Origin: Hyphochytrium catenoides
Taxonomy: Eukaryota; Protista; Hyphochytriomycota
Direction of reading: 5' to 3'
DNA length: 33,744 bases
Assembly (NCBI GenBank): GCA_900088475.1
Contig: FLMG01003455.1
Coordinates: 1 to 33,744, forward strand
Part shown: positions 977 to 24,006 of the stretch, one piece after another
Layout of the letters: each line of letters opens with the position of its first letter
Position numbering within the stretch: the stretch's first letter is position 1
Made by a program: the position numbers and the translations under genes
The notes under the pieces: model-generated
Databases searched by the model: none
What the model was told of the DNA's origin: nothing
The model's input: the letters and a program-made list of their open reading frames with translations, nothing else

Positions 977-3900
977 ATGGTCCAGGACGTAGGCAGCTCC
1001 ACGGACTGGACTCATGTGCGTCTCTCTTCTTTCTTTGCGCTTTTCGATAGCACTCCTTCTCTTCCTACTGGTTGACAGTTTGGCCCTTTGACGCTTTGTC
1101 CATTGTCCTCATAGACTCTGTCGCGGTCCAATTCCTCTCCTTTATGTCTTTTGCCTCCCGCCTGTAGGCTTTCATGTCTTCACTTCCCTCGCTGGCCATG
1201 CTCCTCGCCTCTTAGTATTGCCCGGGCTTCTCTCCCTACCTTCCTATGGGACCCTATCACGCTCTCCTTGTGTGGCCATTCTTGATGTCTCTCCCTTGAT
1301 GACGCAACCTCATTACTCTGAGCTCACTTCTGTTGACCTTTCTCCCATCAAGCCTAAGCTATCTATTTTCCTCCCTCTTCTGTTGGTCTTTTCTCTCCCT
1401 TTCTCACCTTCTCTCATTCTTGCTCTCTCTCTCTCTCTCTCTCCATCTCTCTCCATCTCTCTCTCCATCTCTCTTTGTCGGTTTCTCTTCACTTTGTTCT
1501 ATTGTCTCCTTTCCTCTCTTGGTTCTTGCCTCTGTCTTCTTTGGTCTCCTTCCCTACGCTAGCATTGCTTTGCCCGCTGCCTTCCATCTCTCTCACACTT
1601 CTCTCTCCTCTCTCTCTCTCTCTCTCTTCGTTTTTTAGGTCGCTATAACGCCCCATTTGCGGGCTCATGCTGACCTCTCAGAGCTGCGGCAGCGGTTGGA
1701 AGAGGCCGAGCACAACCCTAGAACTGACGAGGGTGTGGATATAGGAGAAGGAGGAGACCCTGTAGGCGTTCTCACTATAAAAAGCGTGAGAGTGCGAAAC
1801 GCTGCCCAACTGGAGTTTGTCTCTGGTAGGACGGAGGGGAGCACAGGAAAAGAAAATAGATAGGTAGACAGAGAAAGGCAGACTGGGTGAGGCAAGAGAA
1901 AGCAAGAGAGTGAGCAGGAGAGAGAGCGAACTATACAGCAAAAGATATCCGCATGGAATGGACGCAAGGGGGACAGAAGACTCCAGAGACCGTGAAGAGT
2001 GATGACGCCGGGAACTGCATGCAGACTTTAGGTTTTTAGCGTATCGCTGGATTCTTGACATTGTGCTCTCTCTGGCTCACTGTTCTCTCTCTTCCTCGCT
2101 GTCGATTCTCTCTTTCCCTCTGTCGTACTTTATATTCAACTCTGCCTATCTCATGTGTCTCTCTCTCTTGTCTCTCTTCCTCTCTCCCTTGTTCTCTTTG
2201 CCTCCCTCTCAACAGATTTTCCACGCCCCTACGTCACCTTCTCCACCCTTCCTCCTCCAAGCGGAGGTAACAGGGTGACAAAGAGTAGCACCGTGATAAA
2301 GGAAGAGACTGATGGCCGCTCATTCTCATGGCGGGAGGAAGAGTTCCGTTTCACGGGGTTGGGCTCCCTCGATTACAAGTTAAAGGTTGTCGTGAAGTCC
2401 AGGGAAGAGATAGCTGCCGACACCTTCATGGGCCAGGTGGTGATCCCATTTAAGGATCTACTTGACCAGGTAGGAAACACGAGCCATACCTGCTGTCCCC
2501 CTGTGGCTAGTCCCAGTTCCCTTGGTCTCCCCAGCCACTTCAATCTTCTCCTACTTCTTGTACTTCGACTTAACCGTATCCCGTGCTATGTCCAGTGTTG
2601 GCTCATGGGGCTTCATCTCCAGGAGCTCAGCTCTTTTTCCTCGCCGGTGTCATCTTCTTGTTCCTCGGGAAGGTTGACTAGCTCTTCTGCATTACTTTTA
2701 GGGCTTAGACCTCCATTAGGCTTTTTTCTATCTCTTCGAAATCGATCACTTAACGGGTTTTGTTCACATCTTTTGTCTCGTATTGCCGGTTGACTGGTAT
2801 TGCTGTCTCCTTTGTATCCTCTTGCGTCTGCTGTTTTCTACGCAGGAAACTCATGAGGGCTGGCACAAGCTGCAACCTGCCAGCGCTCTGGTCAAAGCCA
2901 AGAGAGCCTATGGAGAGCTGCACCTAGCTGTTAGATTCACATACTCTAAGGTACGTGAGGGAGAGGCGATAGGGCAACAGAGCTCGATACCGCTAGAGCC
3001 TACAGTAGGACGCATTCGGGCCTTTAGGTCAAGTGAATGCTGATTCTGCTTCCTCTTTTTCTTGCTTTCTTCTTGATGGTAAAGGCGTCACTGTTGAGGA
3101 AGCAAGTGGAAGAAGCGGAAAGATGGTACCACAAATTGGAGGCAGAAGCCGAGCTTTGGCAGAAAGCCGCGGCGGGAATGAAGGTTTGTGACCTCACTTG
3201 TCGCCCTCATTCGCGCTACTCTCCTCACATTTCTTTTACCTGTCGCTTCCGCTGTTTCTTTTCTATCGCGTCACTATTGTCTTCCTTACCTGCCCGTATC
3301 CTCATTCGCCCTCACTTGGTGCTGCCGACATCCTTTGCGCAGACTCATATTATCCACCCGGCATCTTATGGAGAGGCTGCAAGAAAGAGTAGGCTTTACA
3401 TTCCTGGCAATAGGTGTGGCCAAAGCTCATTTATTTTCACTCTCCCTCTCCTCCCCACGTATAGATAAGCTGCTCGTTCTCGGCTTTCATCTACATAACC
3501 TCCGTTTGCCAGCTTCCTTTAGTCATTATCATCTTTATCAATCTGTCGAGCTCTAGTTTTCTCCTTTTCGCTGTTGCTTCGGTAGTTGCTTACTGATAGT
3601 TTTCGTGCATCGCCGACCCTTGCTTCAGATTCCATTCCTGGTGTCACCATCCAGGTGCGGTTCAGCGCGCTTCACTCCCGGAAGGCTGCCGAGTGCAGAC
3701 TCCCTTTGGAGCGGGCTCCATTCTGACCTATAATGAGGACAATAAGACCTACAAGGTTGCGGTAGGTATATTAGGCTAGGGAAAGCGTCTTGACTATCAT
3801 TCTTGCAAAAGGGAGGATTGGCTGCAGGAACGTTCTAGAGAGACACTGAGTTAAATTAAAGCCCAGCCTCGGCTACGGGCGACATGGCTCAGGAGTTTAG

Positions 3901-5838
3901 AAAGAAAGAGATAAGGCTTCAGATATTAGGGTGGCAGTGGGAAACAATAGCCATGGGGCCAGAGACGGAGTGTACAGAAGTGTAGCAGCACCCCTTTTCT
4001 TGAGAGATCATTCTCCGTTCCTCGCGGGTCAAGTACTATGTGTAGCTAACCCCATGCGCCTTTCTTCTCTTCCGCTCCACTTGCACTGCACTTCTGTTCA
4101 CCACTATCTGGGCACGTCTCGTATTCAACCCACTATTTCCAGCTGTCATCGAAGGCCATAGGGTATTTCCAGTTTGACGAAGTCAAGGAACAGGAAGACA
4201 GCGACATCTTCCAACCAGGAGATGTCGTTCTTACCCCCTTTGGAGAAGGAAAGATTATTCATCACCGCCCTGACTCCTCATCCTACGCCGTCAAACTTCC
4301 CTTCGGTGTGGGCTACCTGTCCAGTACTGATGTCCAGAAGAAAGAGAAGAAAGCGTACGAGATGACCAACAAAGAACGGATAAGGATGGCGAGGGAGCTA
4401 CGGGCGGAAGGCAACGAGTTCTATAAGGTGAGGGACTTGTCATCCCTTCTTTTGAGTACCTGTTGAACTGTCTTTGCTCCAAGGACAGCTTAGAGAATGT
4501 TACATTTCCTGGATTTGGCTATTGATTTCTACCTGACTGGCCGTTCATGTTGTGCGCCGGACTCTACATTTGTCTAACTCGTTATTTCTTCCTCTTAGCC
4601 GTCTCTGTCTCCCTTAACCTCCTTTTCGCTTGGTCGCTGTCTTGTTGCTTTCACTTCGCTGGTGATGGCGTCTAAGGTCTTAACCTTTTCTCGTCCGCCA
4701 CTATCCTCTTTTAGCAAGGTCGAATAGAGGAGGCTCTGGCAAAGTACAACCACGCACTGGGCTATCTCAATTATTTTAGAGACGGCTCTCACAAAGAGAA
4801 GGCGGAAGTGCTGCAGATCATGGTTCCCTGCTACTCAAACGTGGCAGCGTGTAAGGTAGCTGCGCCAAAGCAAAGAGAGATGGAAATGAAGTGCGCGGTT
4901 TTTATATACACATGCTGGATGTTACCAATATCTCCCTCTCTCTGTCTGTCTCTTTGCACACTCAGCCTCTTTCTCTTGTCCCTTTGCTCCCCGCAGCTTA
5001 AATTGGGTGCCTACAAGGAGGTCGAGGTGGCTGCGAGTACGGTGATGGAGCTTCTTGAGGCTCTTAATGCGAACAAAGAGGGCAAGGTGGCGGAATGGCT
5101 GGGACGACTTGGAACCACAGAGCAAAGGCTTTTTAGTGACTGGGTGAGGGAGTGTTCGCGTTCTAAGTCTTCACGTCTCTGTTGCTCTCATGAACTCTTG
5201 GCTCTTCCCACACACGTCTTCAAGTCAACAGCTCTTCATGCGTCATACCTTTCGTGTCACACTGGCCACCTTAGCGCTCCTATGAAGAGAGCAACGGGGT
5301 AGTTTTCGTCTGGTTGTAAGAGTTTGTCAGAAGTAGTACTCGACAGTAGCTCGCTGACCTCGCGGCTCTCTCTTCTTTTGCTGCTGGTACGGAAGGGGAT
5401 TACCTAACCAGCTATTGCCCTCTCTTTGTGTTCAGCCCAGCAAAGCCCTCTACCGTCGCGGTGAGGCCTTCTACCGCCGCCGTGACTTGGAACTGGCACG
5501 CCGTGACCTCGCCCGTGCTTTCAGACTGGCACCAAAGGACAAGGCTTGTAGAGAGCTGCTGGAGGCTGTTATGAAAGAGATAAGAGGTAGTGCTCGTGAT
5601 GCAGTCTATGTCTCATTGACTCTTCTAGGGCTTCTTCCTCAAGCTGTCCTCTTTCAAAGCCTGCCTTGCGGCTAACTCCTGGCTCACGCTTATTGGCGCT
5701 CCTTCTGACTGTTCCGTCGACGCAGTCGAACGACAGAAAGAGAAGAAGACCTGGGGTAAAGTCTTCCAGCAAGATCCCCTTGATCCTACTACAGCGACAC
5801 TGACCGTCGCAGAGACCATCAGCAGCCCACGGCGGTAA
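977..5838 (+). CDS. Multi-exon C2-domain / tandem TPFG beta-repeat / TPR protein (FKBP/Cyp40-type TPR co-chaperone module without a PPIase domain), ~574 aa
   Basis: Hand-spliced GT-AG model in one continuous frame: 977-1015, 1639-1825, 2216-2469, 2846-2950, 3085-3183, 3343-3413, 3629-3761, 4143-4427, 4715-4855, 4997-5143, 5436-5586, 5726-5838 (1725 nt). C2-like segments: GVLTIKSVRVRN, PYVTF, FSWREEEFRF, LKVVVK...DTFMGQVVIPFKDL, GWHKLQ...GELHLAVRF. TPR segments: MTNKERIRMARELRAEGNEFYKQGRIEEALAKY, YSNVAACKLKLGAY, KALYRRGEAF...ARRDLARAFRLAPKDK, then EKKTWGKVF (like the FKBP post-TPR helix). The first exon/start codon and exon 3343-3413 are the least certain parts. Confidence 0.8.
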
Positions 5839-6070
5839 GTAATGGATAGAAAGCTTATGGTAATGAGATATCGGGGGCAAAAGAGACAGAAGTGACCCAG
5901 AATCGTCTTCGTCCTTCCCACTATTATTTTAGAGAGAGGAAGGAGAAGAGAGGAGAAGGGACGAAACGCGTGTGAGAAAGGGACCCAGTGAATGGGCCAA
6001 AGAGCTTTCCAAAGCCGGAAAGAAGGCCATCAGACGACGATATGTGACGTAGACCATGAGACAGTAGCGT

Positions 6071-6144
6071 GTATGAGAGAGAGAGAGACAGGCACACGGA
6101 GAGGAAAGAAAGAAAGAAAGACAGAAAGAAAGAGAGAGAGAGAG

Positions 6145-6183
<39 letters not shown>

Positions 6184-6192
6184 GAGAAGAGA
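6071..6192. repeat. Compound (GA)n/GAAA microsatellite
   Basis: Visible purine-rich repeat tract downstream of the C2-TPR gene. Confidence 0.85.
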
Positions 6193-7557
6193 GGAACAGA
6201 TAAGAGAGGTATGTCTTGCAAAGTAGGAGGTAAGGGGTCGCAGTTGAGATATACTGATGTTCGAGAATGAAAAGGCACCCGACCGAGGTTGAGGACTCAG
6301 GACCTGACTACTCTCTGCTTTCCATAGATCGCAATTAGATGATCCTTCTAGGACGAGACAACTAAAGGTGCCGCATCCTTAATCTTCATCTTTATTCGTC
6401 TCATTTAGAAGTTCCATCCTCTCTTCTCCGCGGCTCAGGCCGGTTGACAGCGTTACGTCTTTCCTTGGCGAAGCTCATCCTCCTGCTCCTTCCGGTGCTG
6501 ACCACTTGACCCACTATCTCTTTTTCTATCCAGAAAGCAAAGGAGACCTCTCACAAGTTGATTGATGAAGAGCCGGACGTCGCAGAGGAAAAGCGAGAGA
6601 GAGAGCAGAACAAAGGAGAAAGAAGTGGAGGGTCCGCTCTTCCCGTCGTCCTCACCTTCGTTGCAACCGCCGCTATTGCAGCTGCCTATGTCTTCAAGAA
6701 CAGACAAAGCTGAGGCAGCTCTACACCGAGAACCTTCTCTCTCTCCTCCTAAAGAAAACCACATCCCTCGTTGTAAGGCAAGCGTGGTGCTAGCTGACAG
6801 CAGTAAGACATGACAGGAGGAGTGGACAGCTAATGCAAGATCCTTACTTTGACCTTCATCAACGCCATGTCTTGAGAGATGAGACGGAGGAGAGTCTTCT
6901 CCTTTTGTCTTTTCTTAGTATAGAGTCCTCTCGGTCCCTGTCCGTCTGCTCCTAGCCTAACTTCTACTAGGGAATATGCCATTGGGTACAATCCTAGCGT
7001 GTTATGACTGTCCTCGATGGACAGAGAGAGGCAGGAAGAGGAGAGTGTCTGATGGCTAGGAGATGGCATTATAAAACTGCCTTTATAAGTGCAAACAAGG
7101 TCTCTCTTCTTTGGAAAAGATGTTAAGAGCATTGTATCTAACGTATTATCACAGGCTTTACATACAGACAGAGTAGACCATCACAAGGTCTAGCGGTGAC
7201 AAGTACATGTGCAAACGAAAGGAAATATTACTCTCTCTCTCTCTCTCTTTCCCTCTCTGTGTCTTCATCCTAGAGGAGAAAGAGACGGTAGGGACCATGG
7301 AGAGGCACGAAGGAAGAAGAGATGATCTCTAGATGAGAGGGCAGCTAGGAGAGGAAAGCAGCACCATCTCCAGCTGATGACCTCATGACCGCAGACTTCA
7401 GCTTGCTTAGCGATGATCTGCTCTTGAACTTGTACAGTTGACAGAGAGAGAGAAGGAATGGTCGTCGTAAAGAACTAAAAGGAAAGAGAGCGCAAGGAGA
7501 GACTCCCGTCTTGGGGGCCCTCTTGTTCTGCTCTCGCTGGTCCTCTCATTCTGAGCT

Positions 7558-8091
7558 TTATGCTTGGAAGGGCGTCGAGGAGTTGCCTGCCTCTGAGATG
7601 GTAGAAGGTGGCGTCCTCACCATGTCTCTGAGAGAGAATTTTCTGCTAGGCGTTCTCCCTTCCTTAGGCGTCCTGAAGCCGATCGAGCCCATGATGCTGT
7701 TGGTCAGTGACTGTGTGAAGCTCCCGCGGCTGTTCCTGCTGTTGCACCAGTAACAGTGCTGAGAGTTCGCCAGCTGGGGCCACACGCGGCACCGGGAGCA
7801 CGTGGTGTTCCTGCCGCTCCATAGAATGCCACCAATTGCTTTGGTGAGGCTTGGAGGTTTCTCATTGACAAAGAAGTCGTCCTGGGTGTGTCTCTCTTCT
7901 CCCTCTCCGTCTTCCTCACTTTCTGGTTTCTCTCCTACTGGCTTATGCTCAAGCGCTGCTTCAGGGTCTTCTGCTGTGGCGCTGTCCTTCCTTGCGCTAT
8001 GTCTTCTCAGGACGAAGAGAACAAGGATGACAGCGATCAGGCTGCCTCCTATGGCTGAGCCCACGATGATGAAAGTGGTGCTGGACCACAT
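7558..8091 (-). CDS. Hypothetical single-pass membrane protein (N-terminal signal-anchor, acidic linker, C-x2-C-x11-C-x2-C motif)
   Basis: 177-aa ATG-initiated ORF free of microsatellite sequence. Hydrophobic segment FIIVGSAIGGSLIAVILVLFVL is followed by basic RRHSARK, then CSRCRVWPQLANSQHCYWC. No family recognised; extra exons are possible. Confidence 0.55.
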   Translation of the reverse strand: MWSSTTFIIVGSAIGGSLIAVILVLFVLRRHSARKDSATAEDPEAALEHKPVGEKPESEEDGEGEERHTQDDFFVNEKPPSLTKAIGGILWSGRNTTCSRCRVWPQLANSQHCYWCNSRNSRGSFTQSLTNSIMGSIGFRTPKEGRTPSRKFSLRDMVRTPPSTISEAGNSSTPFQA

Positions 8092-8870
8092 CTTCCTTCT
8101 AATAATAGATTCCTCTCGAACACCTCTCTACTTTCTTTTCTCTCTCTCTCTCTCTCGTTGATTGCCTCCTCTCTGTCCCAGGGAGACGAGCTTTCAGTGC
8201 TGGAAAGGAGGGAACTAGATTTATAAGTGAGAAAGAGACGAAAGAGAAGAGAGAGTTCAATGCTTTGCGCAGTCTCTCTTTCTGTCGCCAAGTGGACGGA
8301 GGATGAAGAAGGTTATGTCGGTGGCAGCGGCAGCGGCGGCAACGGCGCGGGGAGGATAAGGAAGAGCTGGAAGGATCGATAATGGGCCCAAGGAGCCAGT
8401 TTGAGATATCATCTGAGAAAAAGATGCAAAGAGAGAGAGAGAGAAGAGAGAGAGACACACAGAGAGAGAGAGAGAGGGGGGCACAAAGAGATAAGGGTGA
8501 GAGGGCAAAGGGAGAGAAAGAGAAGACAATCAGGAAAGTAAGAGAGAGACCGAGAAATGAAGAAAGAGGAGCAAGAGAAAGCTGTGGCGAGGAGGGAGGA
8601 AAAGGGAGGGGAGGAGAGAGACAGAGGACGAACCCAGCAGGGGCAGATGTGCCTTCTGACCCAAGCTGGACTTATGAAGAGGAGGACAAGGCGTGGTTGG
8701 TGGTTATGTCTCTCTTCTACAGAGACGGCAGGAGTACGGCCTGAGACAAATGAAGTAGAGACGAGGGAGAGAAAAAGAGATAGAAAGAGATAGAAGAGAA
8801 GCAGAGAGAGAGGGAGAGAGAGAATCATACGACCACCAACCCTCTCTCAAACTTGTCTTGTCTTATTCTC

Positions 8871-8879
8871 NNNNNNNNN
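8871..8879. other. Assembly gap (9 N)
   Basis: Run of n bases in the sequence. Confidence 1.
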
Positions 8880-9371
8880 AAGCATAGAAAAAGAGCAAGT
8901 AAGGAGGAGGAGGTGGGAGTATGCTCATAAGGGACGGGCGAGAGAGACAGAGTGGAAAGAGAGAGAGATAAAGCATAGAAAGAGAGTGGAGAGACAGAGC
9001 AAACCGGCCATATAAAAGAGAGAGAGAGAGAGACAGAGACAAAAAGGGAAAATTATAAAGATCGAGACGTGGAGGATCGGGGGACGGGTGGGCCGGTTAT
9101 GTGTCCAACGACTCTAGAGAAAAAGTACCGATAACGATGGGTGGGGATGTGGGTTGGACCGTCTGCGCTGCAGTTCTAGTGACCCGAACAGAAAACAGAA
9201 ATTTCCGACCCCGTATCTCTACCGTTATCTGTCTTGGCTGGTAACTCTCTGTCTCAATCTGTATAATAAATAGTCTAGCTAAACAACTCTCTCTTTAGCA
9301 TTATTCTCATCTCCGACTTGTCTCTTTCTCTATCGTTAATGGAAGATGGTCCACTTTTCTCTCCCTTCAAT

Positions 9372-9373
<2 letters not shown>

Positions 9374-9407
<34 letters not shown>
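9374..9407. repeat. (CT)n microsatellite
   Basis: Perfect CT run. Confidence 0.9.
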
Positions 9408-9413
<6 letters not shown>

Positions 9414-11030
9414 CACTCTATTATGATCTCTCATCTTCCCGTCTCTTTTTAGGGTGTCTCTCGCTCGCTCTCTCTTCTCATCTCGTTGCGTGCTCTCTCC
9501 TCTCTTTTCTTCCGTGCTCTCTCTCTCCACCATCCCTCATCTTTTCTTGATGTTGACCGCCTCTCTCTCCTGTTGTCTGCTGGTTCCCTTCTCAAGACCT
9601 TAAGAGATGTCTCCTCCCCCGTCTTCTTCCTTTTTGGCCAAGATAACTTCCTTAAGGAACATGATGGAGGCTGATCATCAAAAAGATGTGTGTGCTCTGG
9701 TGTGGGACGTGCTGATCCTTCCTCGCGCAGCTTCGCTCCTAACCGGGGCTCAACCATCGTTGCTCATATTTGTTGTTGTCTCCTCTGTTATGCCGCTTCT
9801 GCTTTTTAGGAGTCGTCGGTCACAGGTCAATCTTGTTTATTGTCGTTGATGATTTGACTGCTGGCAGCTAAAGCTCTCTCTACAGGCGATCATGGGACTA
9901 ATAAGTAAGCCTGCCACGTGCTGACGCTGCTAGGAAATTTTTGATCTATACATTAATATACATTATATTAGCAGAATGAAGCGAGGATCATTATTCTCTT
10001 TGACAACAATGGCCGCCAGTCACCCTATGGCAATGTCCGTTTAGTCCTATGCCACACCACCCAGCAATGCGGGATTTTCCTTCTCCTCTTCGTATATATT
10101 CTTCGTATATATTGCCAACGAACGTATGATGAGACGTATGTGCTTTCTACATATTTCTCTCCCTCCTCATAATTGATGATTGAAAGAAGTCAAATGAGGC
10201 TGTCTTTCCATAGTATGATAGTAGAGGCTTCTTCAGAGTTATTAGAGGTCCCCTCACGAGCTCTGTATTCTCTCTTCTCTCTGACTAATAATGCCGGTGG
10301 TGGAGAATCCACCTTATCGTGTTGTGCTGGTGGTGCCGTCCTCCTTCTGCTGTTTCCTGCACTGCCCTTGTTTGTGCTGCACTTCTTGCTAATCTTTTTC
10401 TTCGTCGGTTGGTGGCTTCCCTCCTTTGCTGCGCTGCTAATCCACGTCTCCCATAGCGGTGGTACTCTGTGTGTGAACGCTTCAATAGGAAGTGGCTGCA
10501 GCTGTTTGGAGGAGGAGAGAGATCTTCTTCCCTCTTCATCATCATCGATCATCGTCCTCGGCAGCACTTCTTTCACGCTGCTGCTGTCCTCCTCTCCTCC
10601 TCCTCATCATCACCATTATTGTACTGCTGCATTATTAGGAAGGGAAGGACGCCCCTAATATAAACCATGGCTGGCTGTACTCACTTTACAGTCATCCTCC
10701 CGGAGCTCTCCTTGAAGAGGTTGGCACTTTACAAAGAGTGCGCTCTACTCGGCCCTCTCAGTCATAAATAACGGGGAATGCACCTTCAATAATATCGATT
10801 GGAGCGCTTTATGGGCGCACACTTGGCGACTTGGGACTACAGCACGAGCTACAACGGAGTACAGCATGGTAACAACTACAGCCTCATCAACCAGAACTGT
10901 GTAGAGAATGGGAGGAAAGGCAATTTCTGGTGCTGTTTGTATTGCCTGCGATAGTGAGAGACAGAGCAACAGAGAGCCAAGACAGAAGGACAGACAGAGT
11001 TCATAGAGAATAGCGAACCAGGGATAGAAG

Positions 11031-11196
11031 AAAGAGAGAGAGAGAGAGAGAGAGAGACGGAGAGAGAGAAAGAGAGAACAAGAGAGACAGAGTGAGAGAA
11101 AGACAGAGAGACAGACTGAGAGAAAGAGAGAGACACACAGAGAGAGACACAGAGAGAGACAGAGAGAGACACAGAGAGAGAGAGAGAGAGAGAGAG
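11031..11196. repeat. Compound (GA)n/GAGAGACA microsatellite
   Basis: Visible tract; source of the SLSLSV-type ORFs. Confidence 0.9.
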
Positions 11197-11768
11197 TAGG
11201 CTTCTGCCATCAGAAGTCTTCCTCGAGAGTCTAGGAGCGGCATCGCTAGAGCCCTCGCCTATTTCTACCTCTCCTTTCGGGGTTCTTCTACTAGCCAGCA
11301 TTTCTCTTCTCATATCCTTTCGAAGCTCCTACCTCCATCTTCTTAATCTAAGCCACAGCCCGCAGGAGAGGACTAGCAACAGATGCACTGACAGCTTCTG
11401 CCTTTCTCTCGTCCTTGCCGTTGACAGAGAGGTCTTGACCTTACAGAGCGAGAAAGTCAAAAGAGCAAGCGAGCCAGAGACAGAGAGAGAAAAGAGAGAG
11501 AGAAAGGAAGACATAGGGGACGAGACAAGCGAGCCGAACGATCTGCCTAAGAAGAGGACCCGGGCCTTTCACGACAGGAGAGCGCCTTAGAGCCGGGGCT
11601 TTTAAAGCTCGTCAATCGTCTTCGCCAGCTACTTCTCCTTCCCATCTGCAAGTCTCTCTCCTTCCCCACAGCCGAGCAAGCTCGATGGCCACTGCTGCTT
11701 CCCTACTCTCCCAGATATTGCGGCTTTTTGGTTAGAGGAAGGCGGGGTCTTGGCCCCAGAGGGCGTCA

Positions 11769-13244
11769 ATGGCGCCTCCTCCCCAAAGAGAAGAACCTGG
11801 AGACTCTCTCTCCCTGGCAGATGAAATCAAGAGAGAAATTCCATGCAGAGCCGCTGCTCCGGAGCAGGATGGAAAGACTCTGGCCTCTTCTTCCTCTCCA
11901 TCTCCTCCTTCTTCATCTAGCACTTCTCAATCTTCTACGTCTCTTCTCTCCTCCTGCTTTCTCTCCGTCAAAAGCGTTGTCTGCAACCCTCAGATTCTCT
12001 ACAATGCCCTGCTGGTCTGCGGTCTGCTTCTCTCTCTCACTCTCTTCAACATTGTCATGGAATACGTGACGCGCATGTTCAAGCCTCTTCCGGAGACCAG
12101 CGTCATGCTCGTCATCTCTCTCTCGTACGGCCTCACAGGCTTCCTCGCTGCCAGAATAGGGAGAGAGATGAGATCAGAAGCCCCCGAGCGTGTCTTTTTC
12201 CTTGTCTCTCTCTCTTATATCCTCGGCTGGTTCTTCTCTTTCCGCTCTCTTCGCTTTGTCTCCTTCCCTGCTAGAGTCCTAGGTAAGATGTGCAAGCCCG
12301 TGCCCGTGATGGCCTTCGACTGTCTTTTGGGAAAGTTCTATCCTCTAAGAAAGTATGCGACCACTCTGTCTATCACCCTGGGCGCCTCTCTCTTCATGCT
12401 CTATAGCAAAGAGGGAGGGAGCCAAGGGAAGAGCACGCTGAACGGGATGGTGATGCTTCTACTCTCTCTTTGCTGCGATGGCGCCACGGGAGCGATGGAG
12501 AACAAGTTTATCCCGAAGTATAGCATTGGCCCCTTTGAGCTCCTTCAAGGGATCAATCGCTATGTCTTTCTCTTCTCTCTCCTTGCGATCCTTCTCTCTT
12601 CTTCGCTGCATGAACTCAAGCACTTCGTTGAGACCGCAGGCTTGTCTCTCCTTCTCCTCTGCGCGGCAGGATCTATTGGGCAAGTCTTCATCTTCATAGT
12701 CATCTGCAGGCTTGGGGCTCTGAATGCTGTCATTATAGGCACAGCGAGGAAGGTTATTACCGTGGCTGCGTCCATTCTTCTGTACGGACACTTCCTGACT
12801 TTCTTCCAGTTCATTGGGCTCTGCATCACCTTCTGTGCCCTCCTGGTTGACGTCTACTGCAGTACAAAGCGGTTAAGGAGAAAAGCGAATGCAGAGGAGA
12901 CAAGAGGGAAACAGAACTGCGGCGGAGTTGCTCCCAAGCAAGGAGTCGCTCTTCCTGCTCAAGTTTTTCAGCTAGAAAAGCCAGAGAGCGAGCATGTCCT
13001 AGAGATTAAGGAAGGAACCGAGAAAGAACGCGTAGGGGAGAACGTGGCCAAGCCCAAGCCTCTCGGAAGCGTCAAGAGCGAAGAGAAGCACCCTCTCCTC
13101 TCTAAACGTGAGTCAGAGGAGGAAGAAGGAGAGGAGAGCACTGTGCTGGATGTAGTGATCGACCCTCCTCAGCCTGAGAGTCTTGGACAAGTCTGCAGCC
13201 CGCGAAACAAGAGACTGGAAAGCTCAAGAGAAGCTGATGGCTGA
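11769..13244 (+). CDS. SLC35B1: UAA-family nucleotide(-sugar) transporter, SLC35B1/HUT1/UTr1-like, intronless, 491 aa
   Basis: Multiple TM helices plus family motifs SLRFVSFPARVLGKMCKPVPVM (cf. YPTQVLGKSCKPIPVM), LSLCCDGATG, GSIGQVFIF...LGAL...RKVITVAASILLYGH. Low-complexity N- and C-terminal extensions. Confidence 0.88.
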   Translation: MAPPPQREEPGDSLSLADEIKREIPCRAAAPEQDGKTLASSSSPSPPSSSSTSQSSTSLLSSCFLSVKSVVCNPQILYNALLVCGLLLSLTLFNIVMEYVTRMFKPLPETSVMLVISLSYGLTGFLAARIGREMRSEAPERVFFLVSLSYILGWFFSFRSLRFVSFPARVLGKMCKPVPVMAFDCLLGKFYPLRKYATTLSITLGASLFMLYSKEGGSQGKSTLNGMVMLLLSLCCDGATGAMENKFIPKYSIGPFELLQGINRYVFLFSLLAILLSSSLHELKHFVETAGLSLLLLCAAGSIGQVFIFIVICRLGALNAVIIGTARKVITVAASILLYGHFLTFFQFIGLCITFCALLVDVYCSTKRLRRKANAEETRGKQNCGGVAPKQGVALPAQVFQLEKPESEHVLEIKEGTEKERVGENVAKPKPLGSVKSEEKHPLLSKRESEEEEGEESTVLDVVIDPPQPESLGQVCSPRNKRLESSREADG

Positions 13245-19753: not shown

Positions 19754-20559
19754 TTATTGATAGATGCTGGTTACCAGCGTTTGGACTATCGAGTTGTTGC
19801 TTGAGCCATCAGCAGTATCGTGGCGGGGATCGTTCCACTGCTCTTTATCATTCCAGATGGTTGACATGTCGTCGTGAATGAAGGGAACCGCTCAGGACAT
19901 CCTCCCCGCGCCGTTCCACATCCGTCTGCGGTCCCAATCACTAGCTGCGGGTAGTGCCTCTAAGTCCTCTGTTCCACACCTGGCCACCATGGCATGACTT
20001 CATAGGGTTTTTGCCATGCTTTCGGGCGGCAGCTGTCATGCAAGCTCGTCCAGAGGTTTTTCTCAAGTGTCAAGAATGCTTACTCCTTGCCAGCTCACAT
20101 CTCCTAACCTTCGGTCCGCTTAGATTATCGTTATAAATAAAGAGAAGAACTTCCTTCTCAAGGTCGAGGAGTAGGCCCTGATGCTTCTAAGAAAAATCCT
20201 CGATGGACCTTTGGCAGCTACACAGTTTTGAAGGTGTCACCCAAGAGGCAATCCATCCGAGGCACATTCTGTTTAGGCCTCCCAGACGGTAACCGGAGAG
20301 CTAGTAGAGTCATTGTTAGCTCCCCGTCCATGATGTAATAACTACGGCGCTTGGAAGCCAAGCCCTTCCTATCAAGCCCTATGCGTCCACATCCACCTCT
20401 CCTGTGGATATATGAGAGCAACCTGATCCATTGCATTGCATTGAAGGTACAATCTCCAGCTGTAGAAGCTCTCTGGAGAGACTTGGCCTCTTGAGCTCTT
20501 CTTAGACTAATGGGAGTCGCAGCACTAGCGGTGATGCAAAAAAGCAGTAAAGCCTTCAA
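19754..20559 (-). pseudogene. Possible decayed secreted SGNH/GDSL-like esterase fragment (tentative)
   Basis: Broken reading frames: a signal-peptide-like ALLLFCITASAA, then LLGDT (GDS-like) near 20240, and a terminal WNDPRH...NNSIVQTLVTSI (DxxH plus helix) near 19830, separated by stops and frameshifts. Weak pattern match only. Confidence 0.15.
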
Positions 20560-20792
20560 ATGATGAGTCTCTCACAGGCCTGCTTTGGAGCCACCACCAG
20601 TTGTAGAGACCTGACCTCCAACTACCGGCTGGTTATTTCGCCACGCCAAGGACACGCAGAGCTATCTGGAAGATCCCTCAAGAGAGCTAACAAGAAGTCC
20701 GGTGCTTCTATTACATGACTTTCTCGTTGAAGCACTATCACGTCCTAGCGTCCGTCCGCGGCTATAAAACATCGTCGATAGCATGCGGGGCC

Positions 20793-23111
20793 TTACTTGC
20801 GAGAACGACCGCCTTCCTTGAGCAACAGGAGATGTCGAATATTCGGCTCCACTTCTAATGATGGCATCTCTTCACGCAAAAACACCTCTGCCCTTCTGAT
20901 TTCTCTAGCTTTGATGTACGCCTTCAGCAACTCAAAGCAGCTGATCTCGTCAGGACCCACGCCAGCCTCAGGCATGCCCTTGTGCAAGATCTCCTCCATT
21001 GCCTGCCAGTTTCCCATAGATCCATAGCCCCGCAAAAGCAGGTTGAAGTGAATATCGCTTGGCTTCAATCCTAACGATGGCATCTCTTCACGCAAGAACA
21101 CCTCTGCCTTCTCGAGCTCTCCTGACTTGATGTACGCCTTCAGCAACGCGGAGCAGCTGATCTCATCAGGATCCACGCCAGCCTCAGGCATACGCTTGTA
21201 CAGGAGTTCCTCCATTGCATGCCAGTTATCCATAGATCCATAGCCTCCCAGGAGCAGGTTGAAGTGAATATGACTTGGCTTCACTCCAAGCGATGGAACT
21301 TCGTCACAAAGAAATACCTCTGCCTTTTCGAGCTCTCCAGCCTTGATGTACGCCTTCAGCAGCGCAGAGCAACTGATCTCATCAGGACGCACGCCAACTT
21401 CAGACATCTGCTGGTACAGGATCTCTTCCATTGCCTGCCAGTTGCCCATAGATTCATAGCCTCCCAGAAGCAGGTTGAAGTAAATAAGGAGAGGCTGCAC
21501 TCCTAACATCGGTATTCCCTCGAGCAGGAACACCTCCCCCCTCTCGAGCTCTCCAGCCTTGATGTACGCCTTCAGCAACGCAGAGCAGCTGATCTCGTTA
21601 GGATTTAGGCCAACCTCAGGCATGCGCTTGTACAGGATCTCCTCCATTGCCTGCCAGTTGCCCATAGATTCATAGCCTCCCAGGAGCAGGTTGAAGTGAA
21701 TATGGCTTGGCTTCACTCCTAGGGACGGAACCTCCTCACAAAGGAACACCTTTGCCCTCTCGAGCTCTCCAGCCTTGATGTACGCCTTCAGCAGCGCAGA
21801 GCAGCTGATCTTATTAGGATTGACGCCAACTTCAGACATCTGCTGGTACAGGATCTCCTCCATTGCCTGCCAGTTGCCCATAGATTCATAGCCTCCCAGA
21901 AGCAGGTTGAAGTAAATAGGGAAAGGCTGCACTCCTAACATCGGTATTCCCTCGAGCAGGAACTCCTCCCCCTTCTCGAGCTCTCCAGCCTTGATGTACG
22001 CCTTCAGCAACGCAGAGCAGCTGATCTCATCAGGACGCACGCCCATCTCAGGCATGCGCTGGTACAGGACTTCCTCCATCGCCTGCCAGTTGCCCATAGA
22101 TCCATAGCCTCCCAGGAGGAGGTTGAAGTAGATTTCACTTGGCTTCACTCCTAGGGACGGAACTTTCTCACAAAGAAACACCTCTGCCCCCTTGAACTCT
22201 CCAGCCTTGATGTACGCCTTCAGCAGCGCAGAGCAGCTGATCTCATCAGGACGCACGCCAGCCTCAGGCATGCGCTTGTACAGGATCTCCTCCACTGCCT
22301 GCAAGTTGCCCATAGATCCATGGCCTCCCAGGAGAAGGTTGAAATGAATAACATTTGGCTTCAATCCTAGCGACGGAAATTCCTCATGGAAGAACATTTC
22401 TGCCCTCTCGAGCTCTCCAGCCTTGATGTACGCCTTCAGTACCTCAGTGCAGCTGATCTCATTGGGTTTCAAGCCAGCCTCAGGCATGCGCTTGTGCAGG
22501 ATCTCCTCCACTGCCTGCCAGTTGCCCACAGATCCATAGCCTCCCAGAAGAAGGTTGAAACGAGTGAGAGTTGGCTTCACTCCAAGCGACGGAGCTTCCT
22601 CACAAAGAAACGCCTCCGCCTTCTCGAGCTCTCCAGCCTTGATGTACGCCTTCAGTACCTTAGAGCAAGTGTGACTATTCGGCTTCACGCCAGCCTCAGG
22701 CATCTGCTGGTACAGCACCCTCTCGACGGCGTCAAGGTTTCTCGCTGCCCCATACTTCGCGATTTGTCGAGTGAAGCTCGCAACTGGAGGTGGCTCGCTT
22801 CCATCGTCCGGCATATCCCTTTCCGTATACAGATGAAGGGGACGAGTCCTCCCTCCCTTCTCCGCGTTATTGGACAGAGCCTTGCCATAGATTTCTCCCC
22901 ATTGGCCCAGCCCTTGGCCTGAGCATCGCTCCCTCAGAGAGGTCCATGCCACTTGGCTGGCGAGGGCAGTGTAAGTCCTCACGCTGATGGCCTTCCTGCA
23001 AGGCTGTGATGTTATCATCCTCTTCCAGCTCGCATTGACCCAGCTCAAAGAGTAATTGGCTCGGCATCCAGTTATCACACCCGAACGTGCATTCAGAATG
23101 GGCGTGACCAT
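20793..23111 (-). CDS. Pentatricopeptide repeat (PPR) protein, 18 motifs of 36 aa, probable mitochondrial presequence, intronless, ~772 aa
   Basis: PPR-like consensus repeated 18 times (xxxFNLLLGGY...GN..A.EE.L...M...G..PD/N and xxSCSALLKAYIKAGE.E.A..FL....P.LGV.P). First in-frame ATG is at 23111 (the track start 23147 is GTG). The N-terminal ~60 aa are Arg/Ser/Thr-rich and lack acidic residues. Confidence 0.92.
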   Translation of the reverse strand: MVTPILNARSGVITGCRANYSLSWVNASWKRMITSQPCRKAISVRTYTALASQVAWTSLRERCSGQGLGQWGEIYGKALSNNAEKGGRTRPLHLYTERDMPDDGSEPPPVASFTRQIAKYGAARNLDAVERVLYQQMPEAGVKPNSHTCSKVLKAYIKAGELEKAEAFLCEEAPSLGVKPTLTRFNLLLGGYGSVGNWQAVEEILHKRMPEAGLKPNEISCTEVLKAYIKAGELERAEMFFHEEFPSLGLKPNVIHFNLLLGGHGSMGNLQAVEEILYKRMPEAGVRPDEISCSALLKAYIKAGEFKGAEVFLCEKVPSLGVKPSEIYFNLLLGGYGSMGNWQAMEEVLYQRMPEMGVRPDEISCSALLKAYIKAGELEKGEEFLLEGIPMLGVQPFPIYFNLLLGGYESMGNWQAMEEILYQQMSEVGVNPNKISCSALLKAYIKAGELERAKVFLCEEVPSLGVKPSHIHFNLLLGGYESMGNWQAMEEILYKRMPEVGLNPNEISCSALLKAYIKAGELERGEVFLLEGIPMLGVQPLLIYFNLLLGGYESMGNWQAMEEILYQQMSEVGVRPDEISCSALLKAYIKAGELEKAEVFLCDEVPSLGVKPSHIHFNLLLGGYGSMDNWHAMEELLYKRMPEAGVDPDEISCSALLKAYIKSGELEKAEVFLREEMPSLGLKPSDIHFNLLLRGYGSMGNWQAMEEILHKGMPEAGVGPDEISCFELLKAYIKAREIRRAEVFLREEMPSLEVEPNIRHLLLLKEGGRSRK
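20841..22784 (-). repeat. Coding tandem repeat: 9 x 216 bp (A+B PPR pair)
   Basis: Blocks such as 'ctccagccttgatgtacgccttcagc' and 'cagttgcccatagat' recur at exact 216-bp spacing. Confidence 0.95.
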
Positions 23112-23745
23112 TGTGAACGTGAAGCAGCAGCAGACCTTTGCACGCACTCTATAAAAGAGCTTAAAGAATCACAGAGAGACCACTCTACCATCACCTATTT
23201 CTTCCTAATAAACGGTGATAGTCCCAAGTTCTGCGCACTAGGTCATAGCTACGATCGAGGGCTGACAGACCGTAAACGATGGCTCGGGTTTCTGTCCTTC
23301 AAACCAGTGCTGACTTGGGTCATTACAACGCTAGACTTGCTGTGCTGAAGGCATCCAGTCATCTGCTCTCGCCGACTGATTGCTCTGTAGGAAGTGCTGA
23401 TGTTCCGGTGACCTGGTAGTGAGGACTTGGCTGTTCATCAGCTTGATGCTTGAGAGGCGCGGAGGCGGACAGCAGCAGCAATGCATCCTTTGACGGTAGC
23501 CGCAGCCTCACAGCCTCACTCACCACCTCCATCTGTGCCAGAGAGGCCGCAAATCAATCAGAAGTGCCTTCAGCTTTCCTGTGCTACCACTGGGGGAGGC
23601 CTGCCCTCTGAATAAGAGGGATTACGGAATCAAGGCCGTATAAGCGGAGATTTATGTAGGATACATACTCTCCTATTCAGGATCGATCTGATACGCATAT
23701 GCCCTTCAAACAGCTGCATTCTTCTGGGGTCTTCACGAGGAAGTT

Positions 23746-24006
23746 CAACAGCAACAACAGCAGGAGCAGCAGCAGGAGCAGCAGCAGCGGCAGCAGCAGC
23801 GGCAGCAGCAGGAGCAGCAGCAGCAGCAGCGGCAGCAGCAGCGGCAGCAGCACCAGGAGCAACAGCAGGAGCAGGAGTGGCAGCAGCAGCAGGAGCAGCA
23901 GCAGCAGCAGCAGGAGCAGCAGCAGGAGCAGCAGCAGGAGCAGCAGCAGCGGCAGCAACAGCAGCAGCAGCAGCAGCAGAAGCAGCAGCGGCAGCAGTAG
24001 CAGCAG
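23746..24006 (+). repeat. Imperfect (CAG)n trinucleotide array with GAG/CGG/CAA variants (~87 triplets)
   Basis: Directly visible cagcaggagcagcagcagcgg... tract; it generates the poly-Ala, poly-Leu and poly-Ser ORFs in the track. Confidence 0.95.

Follow-up and report, generated by a model that had tools for sequence, protein, structure and literature searches.

Positions 1 to 33,744 of contig FLMG01003455.1 of Hyphochytrium catenoides (assembly GCA_900088475.1), the whole stretch of DNA that we analysed and call the window, carry an intact gene for a pentatricopeptide repeat (PPR) protein without a catalytic domain. The repeats are of two motif types, A and B, which alternate strictly and are each 36 amino acids (aa) long, and the gene is a member of a multigene subfamily present on at least 12 contigs of the genome. 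We consider it probable that this intact nuclear gene encodes a mitochondrial protein that binds single-stranded RNA and reads mainly every second base, and that the subfamily is restricted to this genome. The gene has the following parts:

20793-23111, minus strand: whole coding sequence, single exon, 772 aa plus stop (stop codon 20793-20795; ATG 23111-23109).
22785-23111, minus strand: N-terminal 109 aa, a probable mitochondrial presequence plus a disordered linker (from composition, predicted local distance difference test (pLDDT) and paralogue conservation).
20841-22784, minus strand: PPR array of 18 motifs of 36 aa, A and B alternating, in nine units of 216 bp.
21273-22136, minus strand: two copies of a 432-bp block of two units, or four motifs (units 4-5 at 21705-22136; units 6-7 at 21273-21704).
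20796-20840, minus strand: C-terminal cap, made up of half an A-type motif (aa 758-767, a single helix) followed by a short basic tail.

The gene lies in the sole long open frame across the region (20793-23147, minus strand). The frame is uninterrupted, and the count of N is zero across positions 20000-24000. The first ATG and the N-terminal segment are kept in paralogues on other contigs, and the C-terminus (last B motif, half motif, basic tail and stop) is kept in at least five paralogues (C4408, C1149, C1634, C2965 and C4325). A GTAAG-like string overlaps the stop codon, and an intron at this point was considered and rejected, because in five paralogues the protein ends here too, with a comparable basic tail and a stop. 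We therefore take the stop to be genuine rather than part of a splice donor, and the protein terminates 15 aa past the array.

The translation from the ATG at 23111 was cut into 36-residue pieces from residue 110 on. This yielded 18 consecutive 36-aa motifs with strict A/B alternation and neither insertion nor deletion, as the original prediction, made from the letters of the window, had it; its array coordinates were exact, from 22784 at the start of motif 1 to 20841 at the end of motif 18 on the minus strand. Odd motifs are of type A (signature FNLLLGGYGS) and even motifs of type B (signature LLKAYIKAGE), and the two consensus sequences are identical at 11 of 36 positions (∼31%). Unit 1 consists of a degenerate A motif and a B motif, and a 19th, half A-type motif caps the array. 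Tandem Repeats Finder detected a 216-bp period (8.5 copies, 82% matches, score 2218) at 20880-22715. In the best 200-aa segment, self-identity was 0.32 at a lag of 36, 0.79 at a lag of 72 and 0.87 at a lag of 144 residues. The two-motif period is real, and a four-motif period is superimposed on it.

The units had been described as nearly identical at the DNA level, which was too strong. DNA identity among the inner 216-bp units was 83% on average (76-91%), and unit 1 shared only 60-69% with the other units. At the protein level, identity was ∼74% among inner units and 69% across all nine. Synonymous divergence (dS) among inner units ranged from 0.15 to 0.86, and the ratio of non-synonymous to synonymous divergence (dN/dS) between units was ∼0.2-0.9. 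The array, with its intact frame, is under purifying selection. Units 4 and 6 share 90% DNA identity and units 5 and 7 share 91% (dS 0.15 and 0.27), and the longest exact repeat in the gene (60 bp) sits within this block. The 432-bp duplication of units 4-5/6-7 is the only clearly recent one of the array. Hence, the recent amplification that had been proposed holds for this block, but not for the array as a whole; dS among inner units is mostly 0.3-0.6, and most unit pairs fall within 0.3-0.9.

A Pfam scan of the 772-aa protein gave PPR_3 (1.8e-62, 207.7 bits; cut-off 25), PPR_2 (4e-57, 190.6 bits; cut-off 30), PPR (8.5e-34, 113.9 bits; cut-off 25), PPR_long (2.4e-31, 109.2 bits; cut-off 27) and PPR_1 (83.8 bits; cut-off 23.8). 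That scan gave no other credible domain; catalytic, E and DYW domains were all absent from its results. An AlphaFold2 run with a seven-sequence paralogue alignment, which yields a predicted model and not a solved structure, placed 18.5 regular helix pairs with pLDDT >90 in residues 110-767 and predicted residues 1-106 to be disordered (pLDDT <50). Each motif in the model has a helix a of 13 aa, a loop of 3, a helix b of 14 and a loop of 6. When the model was compared with the PDB by Foldseek, the top match was maize PPR10 (4m57/4m59; E 1e-17, probability 1.00), and the lower-ranked matches 5i9f and 5orq also had a probability of 1.00. The best matches further included 8r6s_G (a PPR subunit of the plastid-encoded RNA polymerase) and designer PPRs, and mitoribosomal PPR chains were among the matches. 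The protein is thus predicted to form a right-handed solenoid of antiparallel helix pairs like that of PPR10 and dPPR. Pfam, motif anatomy, AlphaFold and Foldseek agree on the modular PPR architecture with a two-motif period that had been proposed, and the superhelix, which it had been suggested to check, came out as a regular helix-pair solenoid with high pLDDT across the array.

In a phmmer search of the PDB sequences, dPPR-U10 was matched at E 3.5e-69, which bears out the earlier view of the array as a near-consensus scaffold. In this alignment, residues 5 and 36 of both motif types fall on PPR code positions 5 and 35, and the single extra residue of the 36-aa motifs is located in helix b. 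RNA-facing positions were assigned by the dPPR alignment rather than measured on the AlphaFold2 model. All motifs (18/18) depart from the usual PPR length of ∼35 aa. Length is not a strict criterion for a PPR motif; in plants, L2 motifs have 36 aa and S motifs 31-32.

The genome (4759 contigs, 61 Mb) was searched in six frames with the 772-aa protein. Paralogues with 57-73% identity were found on C4408, C1149, C420, C1634, C2965, C2767, C1873, C4325, C1676, C4263 and C1238, and more distant ones, with lower unit scores, on C58 (43%), C2157 (33%), C2495 and C1539. The family arrays were parsed with separate 36-aa A and B models; a 72-aa unit HMMER model gave ragged registers. With the A and B models, paralogues with different repeat numbers and code residues were found, the kind of relatives that the original prediction had proposed to look for. 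All family arrays run ABAB with 36-residue spacing and have motif counts of 8, 10, 18, 20, 25+ or 28+. Rarely, the spacing is 37-38 residues or the array is interrupted by 55-95 residues, and some of these interruptions look like the pre-array region. A profile built from 68 units gave 144 matches in the genome at 43-148 bits, and full units in the twelve core contigs mostly scored 110-148 bits. DNA identity between units was 0.783 on the same contig vs. 0.761 on different contigs. Within-contig identity barely exceeds between-contig identity, so it is the family as a whole that is uniform. Selection or exchange between copies would have maintained this uniformity, which does not stem from a recent burst in this gene. 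Since the genome is heterozygous, some of the 'paralogues' found on short contigs could be alleles.

On C2965, a tandem cluster of family genes (L008, L015, L022, L024, L019, L014 and L007) extends over ∼2885-12750. A 1272-aa open frame on the same contig contains three A/B arrays with 93-95-aa spacers between them, and these spacers resemble the pre-array linker plus the degenerate first motif of the single-array genes. Whole arrays may have fused in frame here, or the triple array may be an artefact of scaffolding; there are N gaps close by.

The residue pairs at positions 5 and 36 of the A motifs of this copy are, in order, TN, NN, ND, ND, NN, NN, ND, ND and ND, with A5 invariant over the eight canonical A motifs. 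Those of the B motifs are ST, TN, SS, SF, SS, SL, SS, SS and FN. Among 115 A motifs of the family, position 5 is N in 57 and T in 55 (112/115), and position 36 is D in 51, N in 44 and S in 12 (107/115). Canonical pairs make up 94 of the 115 (82%; ND 31, TN 24, TD 20 and NN 19). The A-code strings differ among paralogues, including close ones. In family B motifs, the pairs are ST (32), SS (13), SN (9), AT (6), SD (6) and others including LT and AC. Designer PPRs with ST or SS showed no more than smeared binding to A (PMC6468296). The restricted A alphabet coincides with the plant PPR code, which is the strongest argument from sequence that the A motifs may read bases. A 'programmable' RNA-binding scaffold, as had been suggested, is speculation, as the B-motif code is mostly non-canonical.

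Variation was analyzed by pooled pairwise counts over 100 family units, with an overall proportion of synonymous differences (pS) of 0.386 and of non-synonymous differences (pN) of 0.188. Relative to overall pS, pN was highest at B22 (1.39), B36 (1.32), A14 (1.26) and A1 (1.18), followed by B27 (1.14), A2 (1.09) and B29 (1.03), and A36 and A5 ranked 19th (0.69) and 25th (0.58) of 72 sites. Within this copy, the most variable sites were A1, A34, B25, B28 and B36. By analogy with PPR10– and dPPR–RNA complexes, we take B36, A1 and A2 to surround the pocket of the B-facing nucleotide, and the remaining hot sites presumably lie in the a-b loop or on the outer helix. For rates near 1, relaxed constraint would be no worse an explanation than positive selection. 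The original prediction had placed the variation around the motif junctions. The B-to-A junction is indeed a hot spot, but helix-b and loop sites away from the junctions are hot as well. Its likening of the array to transcription activator-like effectors (TALEs) did not hold, with a unit protein identity of 74% and variation spread over at least seven sites, including the non-code sites A1, A34, B25, B28, B22 and A14.

The assembly is reported as 4758 scaffolds plus one mitochondrial record (PMC5795050). The cox1 gene was found on C4759, the 48,127-bp mitochondrial genome, and its best named relatives are stramenopiles (81-85% identity). A cox1 profile matched C4759 (43188-44531) and C1785 (9748-11091) with equal score (523.3 bits, E 7.0e-156); therefore, part of the mitochondrial DNA (mtDNA) is present twice in the assembly. 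The assembly was also searched for psbA and light-harvesting-complex genes, and neither was found. On these grounds plastid targeting was rejected, and no plastid genome was found in the published genome analysis (PMC5795050). The first 60 aa of the protein contain 8 R/K, no D/E and 21 S/T/A. From this presequence-like composition, in an organism without a plastid, we infer as the best reading that the protein is probably imported into mitochondria.

Once imported, the protein would bind single-stranded RNA along its inner groove with one motif per nucleotide, like P-class PPRs. The A motifs would read a base through the 5/36 pair. In this copy, ND and NN would specify U or C, and the TN of the first motif would specify A. 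The B motifs (ST, SS and others) would at best weakly favour A, and the B pocket appears to evolve near the neutral rate, so that specificity would come mainly from every second nucleotide. Paralogues that differ in repeat number and A-code string would bind different RNAs. Binding could stabilise a mitochondrial transcript, mark its ends or control its translation, as in other non-catalytic PPRs.

A bolder version of this proposal, which we hold to be rather unlikely, treats the 36+36 pair as an obligate 'reader plus spacer' module. The A motif would read canonically and B would be a permissive or differently coded partner, RNA would be recognised at every second nucleotide, and the family would retarget itself by unit duplication and by N/T and D/N switches in the A motifs. 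The glycine-rich helix a of A, packing on the bulky helix a of B, would enforce the alternation. If true, this would be an independently evolved, RFL-like adaptive RNA recognition system in a heterotrophic stramenopile (RFL, restorer-of-fertility-like), and nature would offer a template for designing PPRs that work in a two-nucleotide register.

Several points weigh against a mitochondrial RNA binder encoded by an intact gene. A PPR-code weight matrix was run over both mtDNA strands, with motif-order permutations and Markov sequences as nulls. For this protein and 15 other arrays, no site beating chance was found in a scan with almost no power (best score 11.3 bits vs. a null maximum of 12.5 +/- 0.9). 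The information is at most ∼15 bits, which is too low for a 96-kb search space, and the scan is for this reason uninformative, neither negative evidence nor support. The monotonous U/C code of the A motifs in this copy would predict a low-complexity target. Finally, the assembly was made by Platanus from 76- and 100-bp reads of a heterozygous diploid, with no long reads (PMC5795050). With such Illumina data (∼2.75% single-nucleotide polymorphism frequency), short reads could have collapsed, expanded or chimerised the repeats of paralogues or haplotypes, and the locus would then be an assembly artefact or a dead copy; several paralogues have N gaps or run into contig ends. This copy, however, is N-free, its 772-aa frame is intact, and both its N-terminus and its C-terminus are conserved; its units differ by 9-40%. 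The gene contains no exact repeat of ≥71 bp, and with the longest at 60 bp, 100-bp reads can therefore bridge each repeated stretch. The count of 18 motifs is probably correct, and we regard an artefact or a dead copy as very improbable.

If the gene is intact, the family might still serve something other than steady transcript maintenance. It could be engaged in an arms race, like the RFL PPRs of plants, tracking selfish or changing mitochondrial or viral RNAs, with the hot spots of the B pocket reflecting diversifying selection. The tandem gene cluster on C2965, the varying copy and repeat numbers, the differing code strings of close paralogues, pN above family-wide pS at B22, B36, A14 and A1, and the failure of public searches to find orthologues outside this genome are consistent with this scenario. 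However, ratios of 1.1-1.4 from pooled pairwise counts are indistinguishable from neutrality, and half of the hot sites (B22, A14, B27 and B29) are not RNA-facing by PPR10/dPPR analogy. In a test for RFL-like features, the tandem cluster was present and B36 stood at 1.32, but the canonical code positions A5 and A36 were below 1, in counts that cannot establish positive selection; moreover, the mtDNA code scan yielded no target. An arms race has, in our judgement, perhaps one chance in several. A structural or protein-binding solenoid, such as a mitoribosomal or assembly-factor PPR in which the code-like residues are inherited and out of use, is improbable. Many non-plant PPRs are ribosomal or scaffold subunits, with mitoribosomal chains among the Foldseek matches here, the B motifs lack canonical codes, and the array is net acidic (90 D/E vs. 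62 K/R). But position 5 of the A motifs is restricted to N or T and position 36 to D, N or S, with all four canonical pairs in use across paralogues, a pattern that would be hard to explain without base reading. Ribosomal PPR subunits are also usually single-copy and degenerate, whereas the present family occupies at least 12 contigs and varies in repeat number. We thus keep to the reading of a mitochondrial RNA binder with specificity at alternate nucleotides.

Relatives of the subfamily were sought outside the genome. A word-based search of 5.8 billion proteins with this protein returned only generic PPR proteins, with 20-38% identity over partial lengths. Similar results were obtained when the C58 paralogue, which has the most divergent doublet, was the query, with only generic PPR similarity. 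A hidden Markov model of the 72-aa unit found no family-level relative among 1.84 billion representatives. The best match reached 268 bits over 15 stretches, and the best single stretch in any outside protein scored 39.6 bits, vs. 110-148 bits per unit within the family. A scan of 241 million metagenome records with two signature peptides revealed no relative, and an exact-protein look-up in public assemblies had no record of the 772-aa protein. In the literature, we found no description of stramenopile or oomycete PPRs of this type, of alternating or 36-/72-aa PPR motifs, or of a Hyphochytrium PPR, and the H. catenoides genome paper makes no mention of PPR proteins (PMC5795050). The subfamily appears to be confined to this genome in current public data, and the suggestion of a lineage-specific class stands to that extent.

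Two-motif super-periods were then looked for among the 150 best outside matches. They were present in Sphagnum cluster P0310 (70 aa), the diatom Grammatophora P0221 (74 aa), Polarella P0327 (71 aa) and an unnamed metagenomic protein (72 aa, as 35+37). The gammaproteobacterium Parashewanella curva (P0183/P0345) has a PPR-like protein of ∼1300 aa with 85-aa two-motif units of 82% identity, a doublet array of unusual uniformity in a bacterium. Very uniform single-motif PPR-like arrays, both with long non-repeat parts, were also found (P0190, 34-aa repeats, 80%; P0199, 32-aa repeats, 85%). The A-B doublet, which had been put forward as a distinguishing trait, is therefore not one, with super-periods also in Sphagnum, a diatom, a dinoflagellate and a bacterium. 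These data show that (i) doublets and high uniformity recur among PPR proteins, and the design principle is not unique; and (ii) this family stands apart by its 36+36 pair, kept strictly throughout its members. The arrays of Sphagnum P0310, Grammatophora P0221, Polarella P0327, P. curva P0183 and P0195 resemble ours in that self-identity is much higher at the two-motif lag (70-85 aa) than at the one-motif lag. They differ in motif types and lengths (35+35, 35+37 and ∼85 aa), and the doublets are not homologous (best stretch at most 39.6 bits against the family unit profile).

Among known systems, the closest in sequence and fold, by strong matches, are the P-class PPRs (maize PPR10) and dPPR/cPPR. 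The helix-hairpin solenoid and the lack of a catalytic C-terminal domain are shared, as are code residues at position 5 and the last position, for which A motifs here use ND/NN/TN/TD. In contrast, our motifs are 36 aa rather than 35, with the extra residue in helix b, and come in two strictly alternating types, of which B carries mostly ST/SS. The repeats are also far more uniform than those of natural P-class proteins. The PLS-class PPRs of land plants likewise have a higher-order repeat of different motif types, and in both cases one type (L in plants, B in this family) is 35-36 aa long and departs from the canonical code residues. In these RNA-editing factors, the P-L-S triplets precede E1/E2 and often a DYW deaminase domain. 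The arrangement here is, however, a doublet of equal-length motifs and not a P-L-S triplet; S motifs of 31-32 aa are lacking, as are E and DYW domains, and no sequence relationship exists at the subfamily level.

With the RFL PPRs of flowering plants, the family shares a lineage-specific expansion, tandem clusters, variable repeat number and high non-synonymous change at some RNA-facing sites. The lineage and the motif organisation are different, the pooled counts here do not establish positive selection, and the family is not known to be linked to a mitochondrial selfish gene. In TALEs, helical repeats lie in tandem and each specifies a base by a pair of residues, but these proteins belong to an unrelated fold family and bind double-stranded DNA. 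Moreover, TALE repeats are near-identical outside two variable residues, whereas the units here share ∼74% identity and have many variable sites.

PPR proteins are the main sequence-specific organellar RNA binders and the basis of designer RNA tools, and knowledge of their code comes nearly all from plants. Alternating motif types, one of them with a canonical code, provide a natural experiment on motif context in base reading. The family is also a non-plant case of PPR genes that expanded independently within one lineage, in an organism that offers them just a 48-kb mitochondrial genome as a target. This gene, an unusual variant of a well-known family, leaves the general view of PPR proteins as it was.

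Elsewhere in the window, a 9-base N run at 8871-8879 (a scaffold gap) is the only gap. A CAGCAG-type hexamer occurs 43 times at 23749-24006, ∼640 bp upstream of where the PPR gene starts, and several frames are open there as poly-Ala, poly-Leu or poly-Ser.

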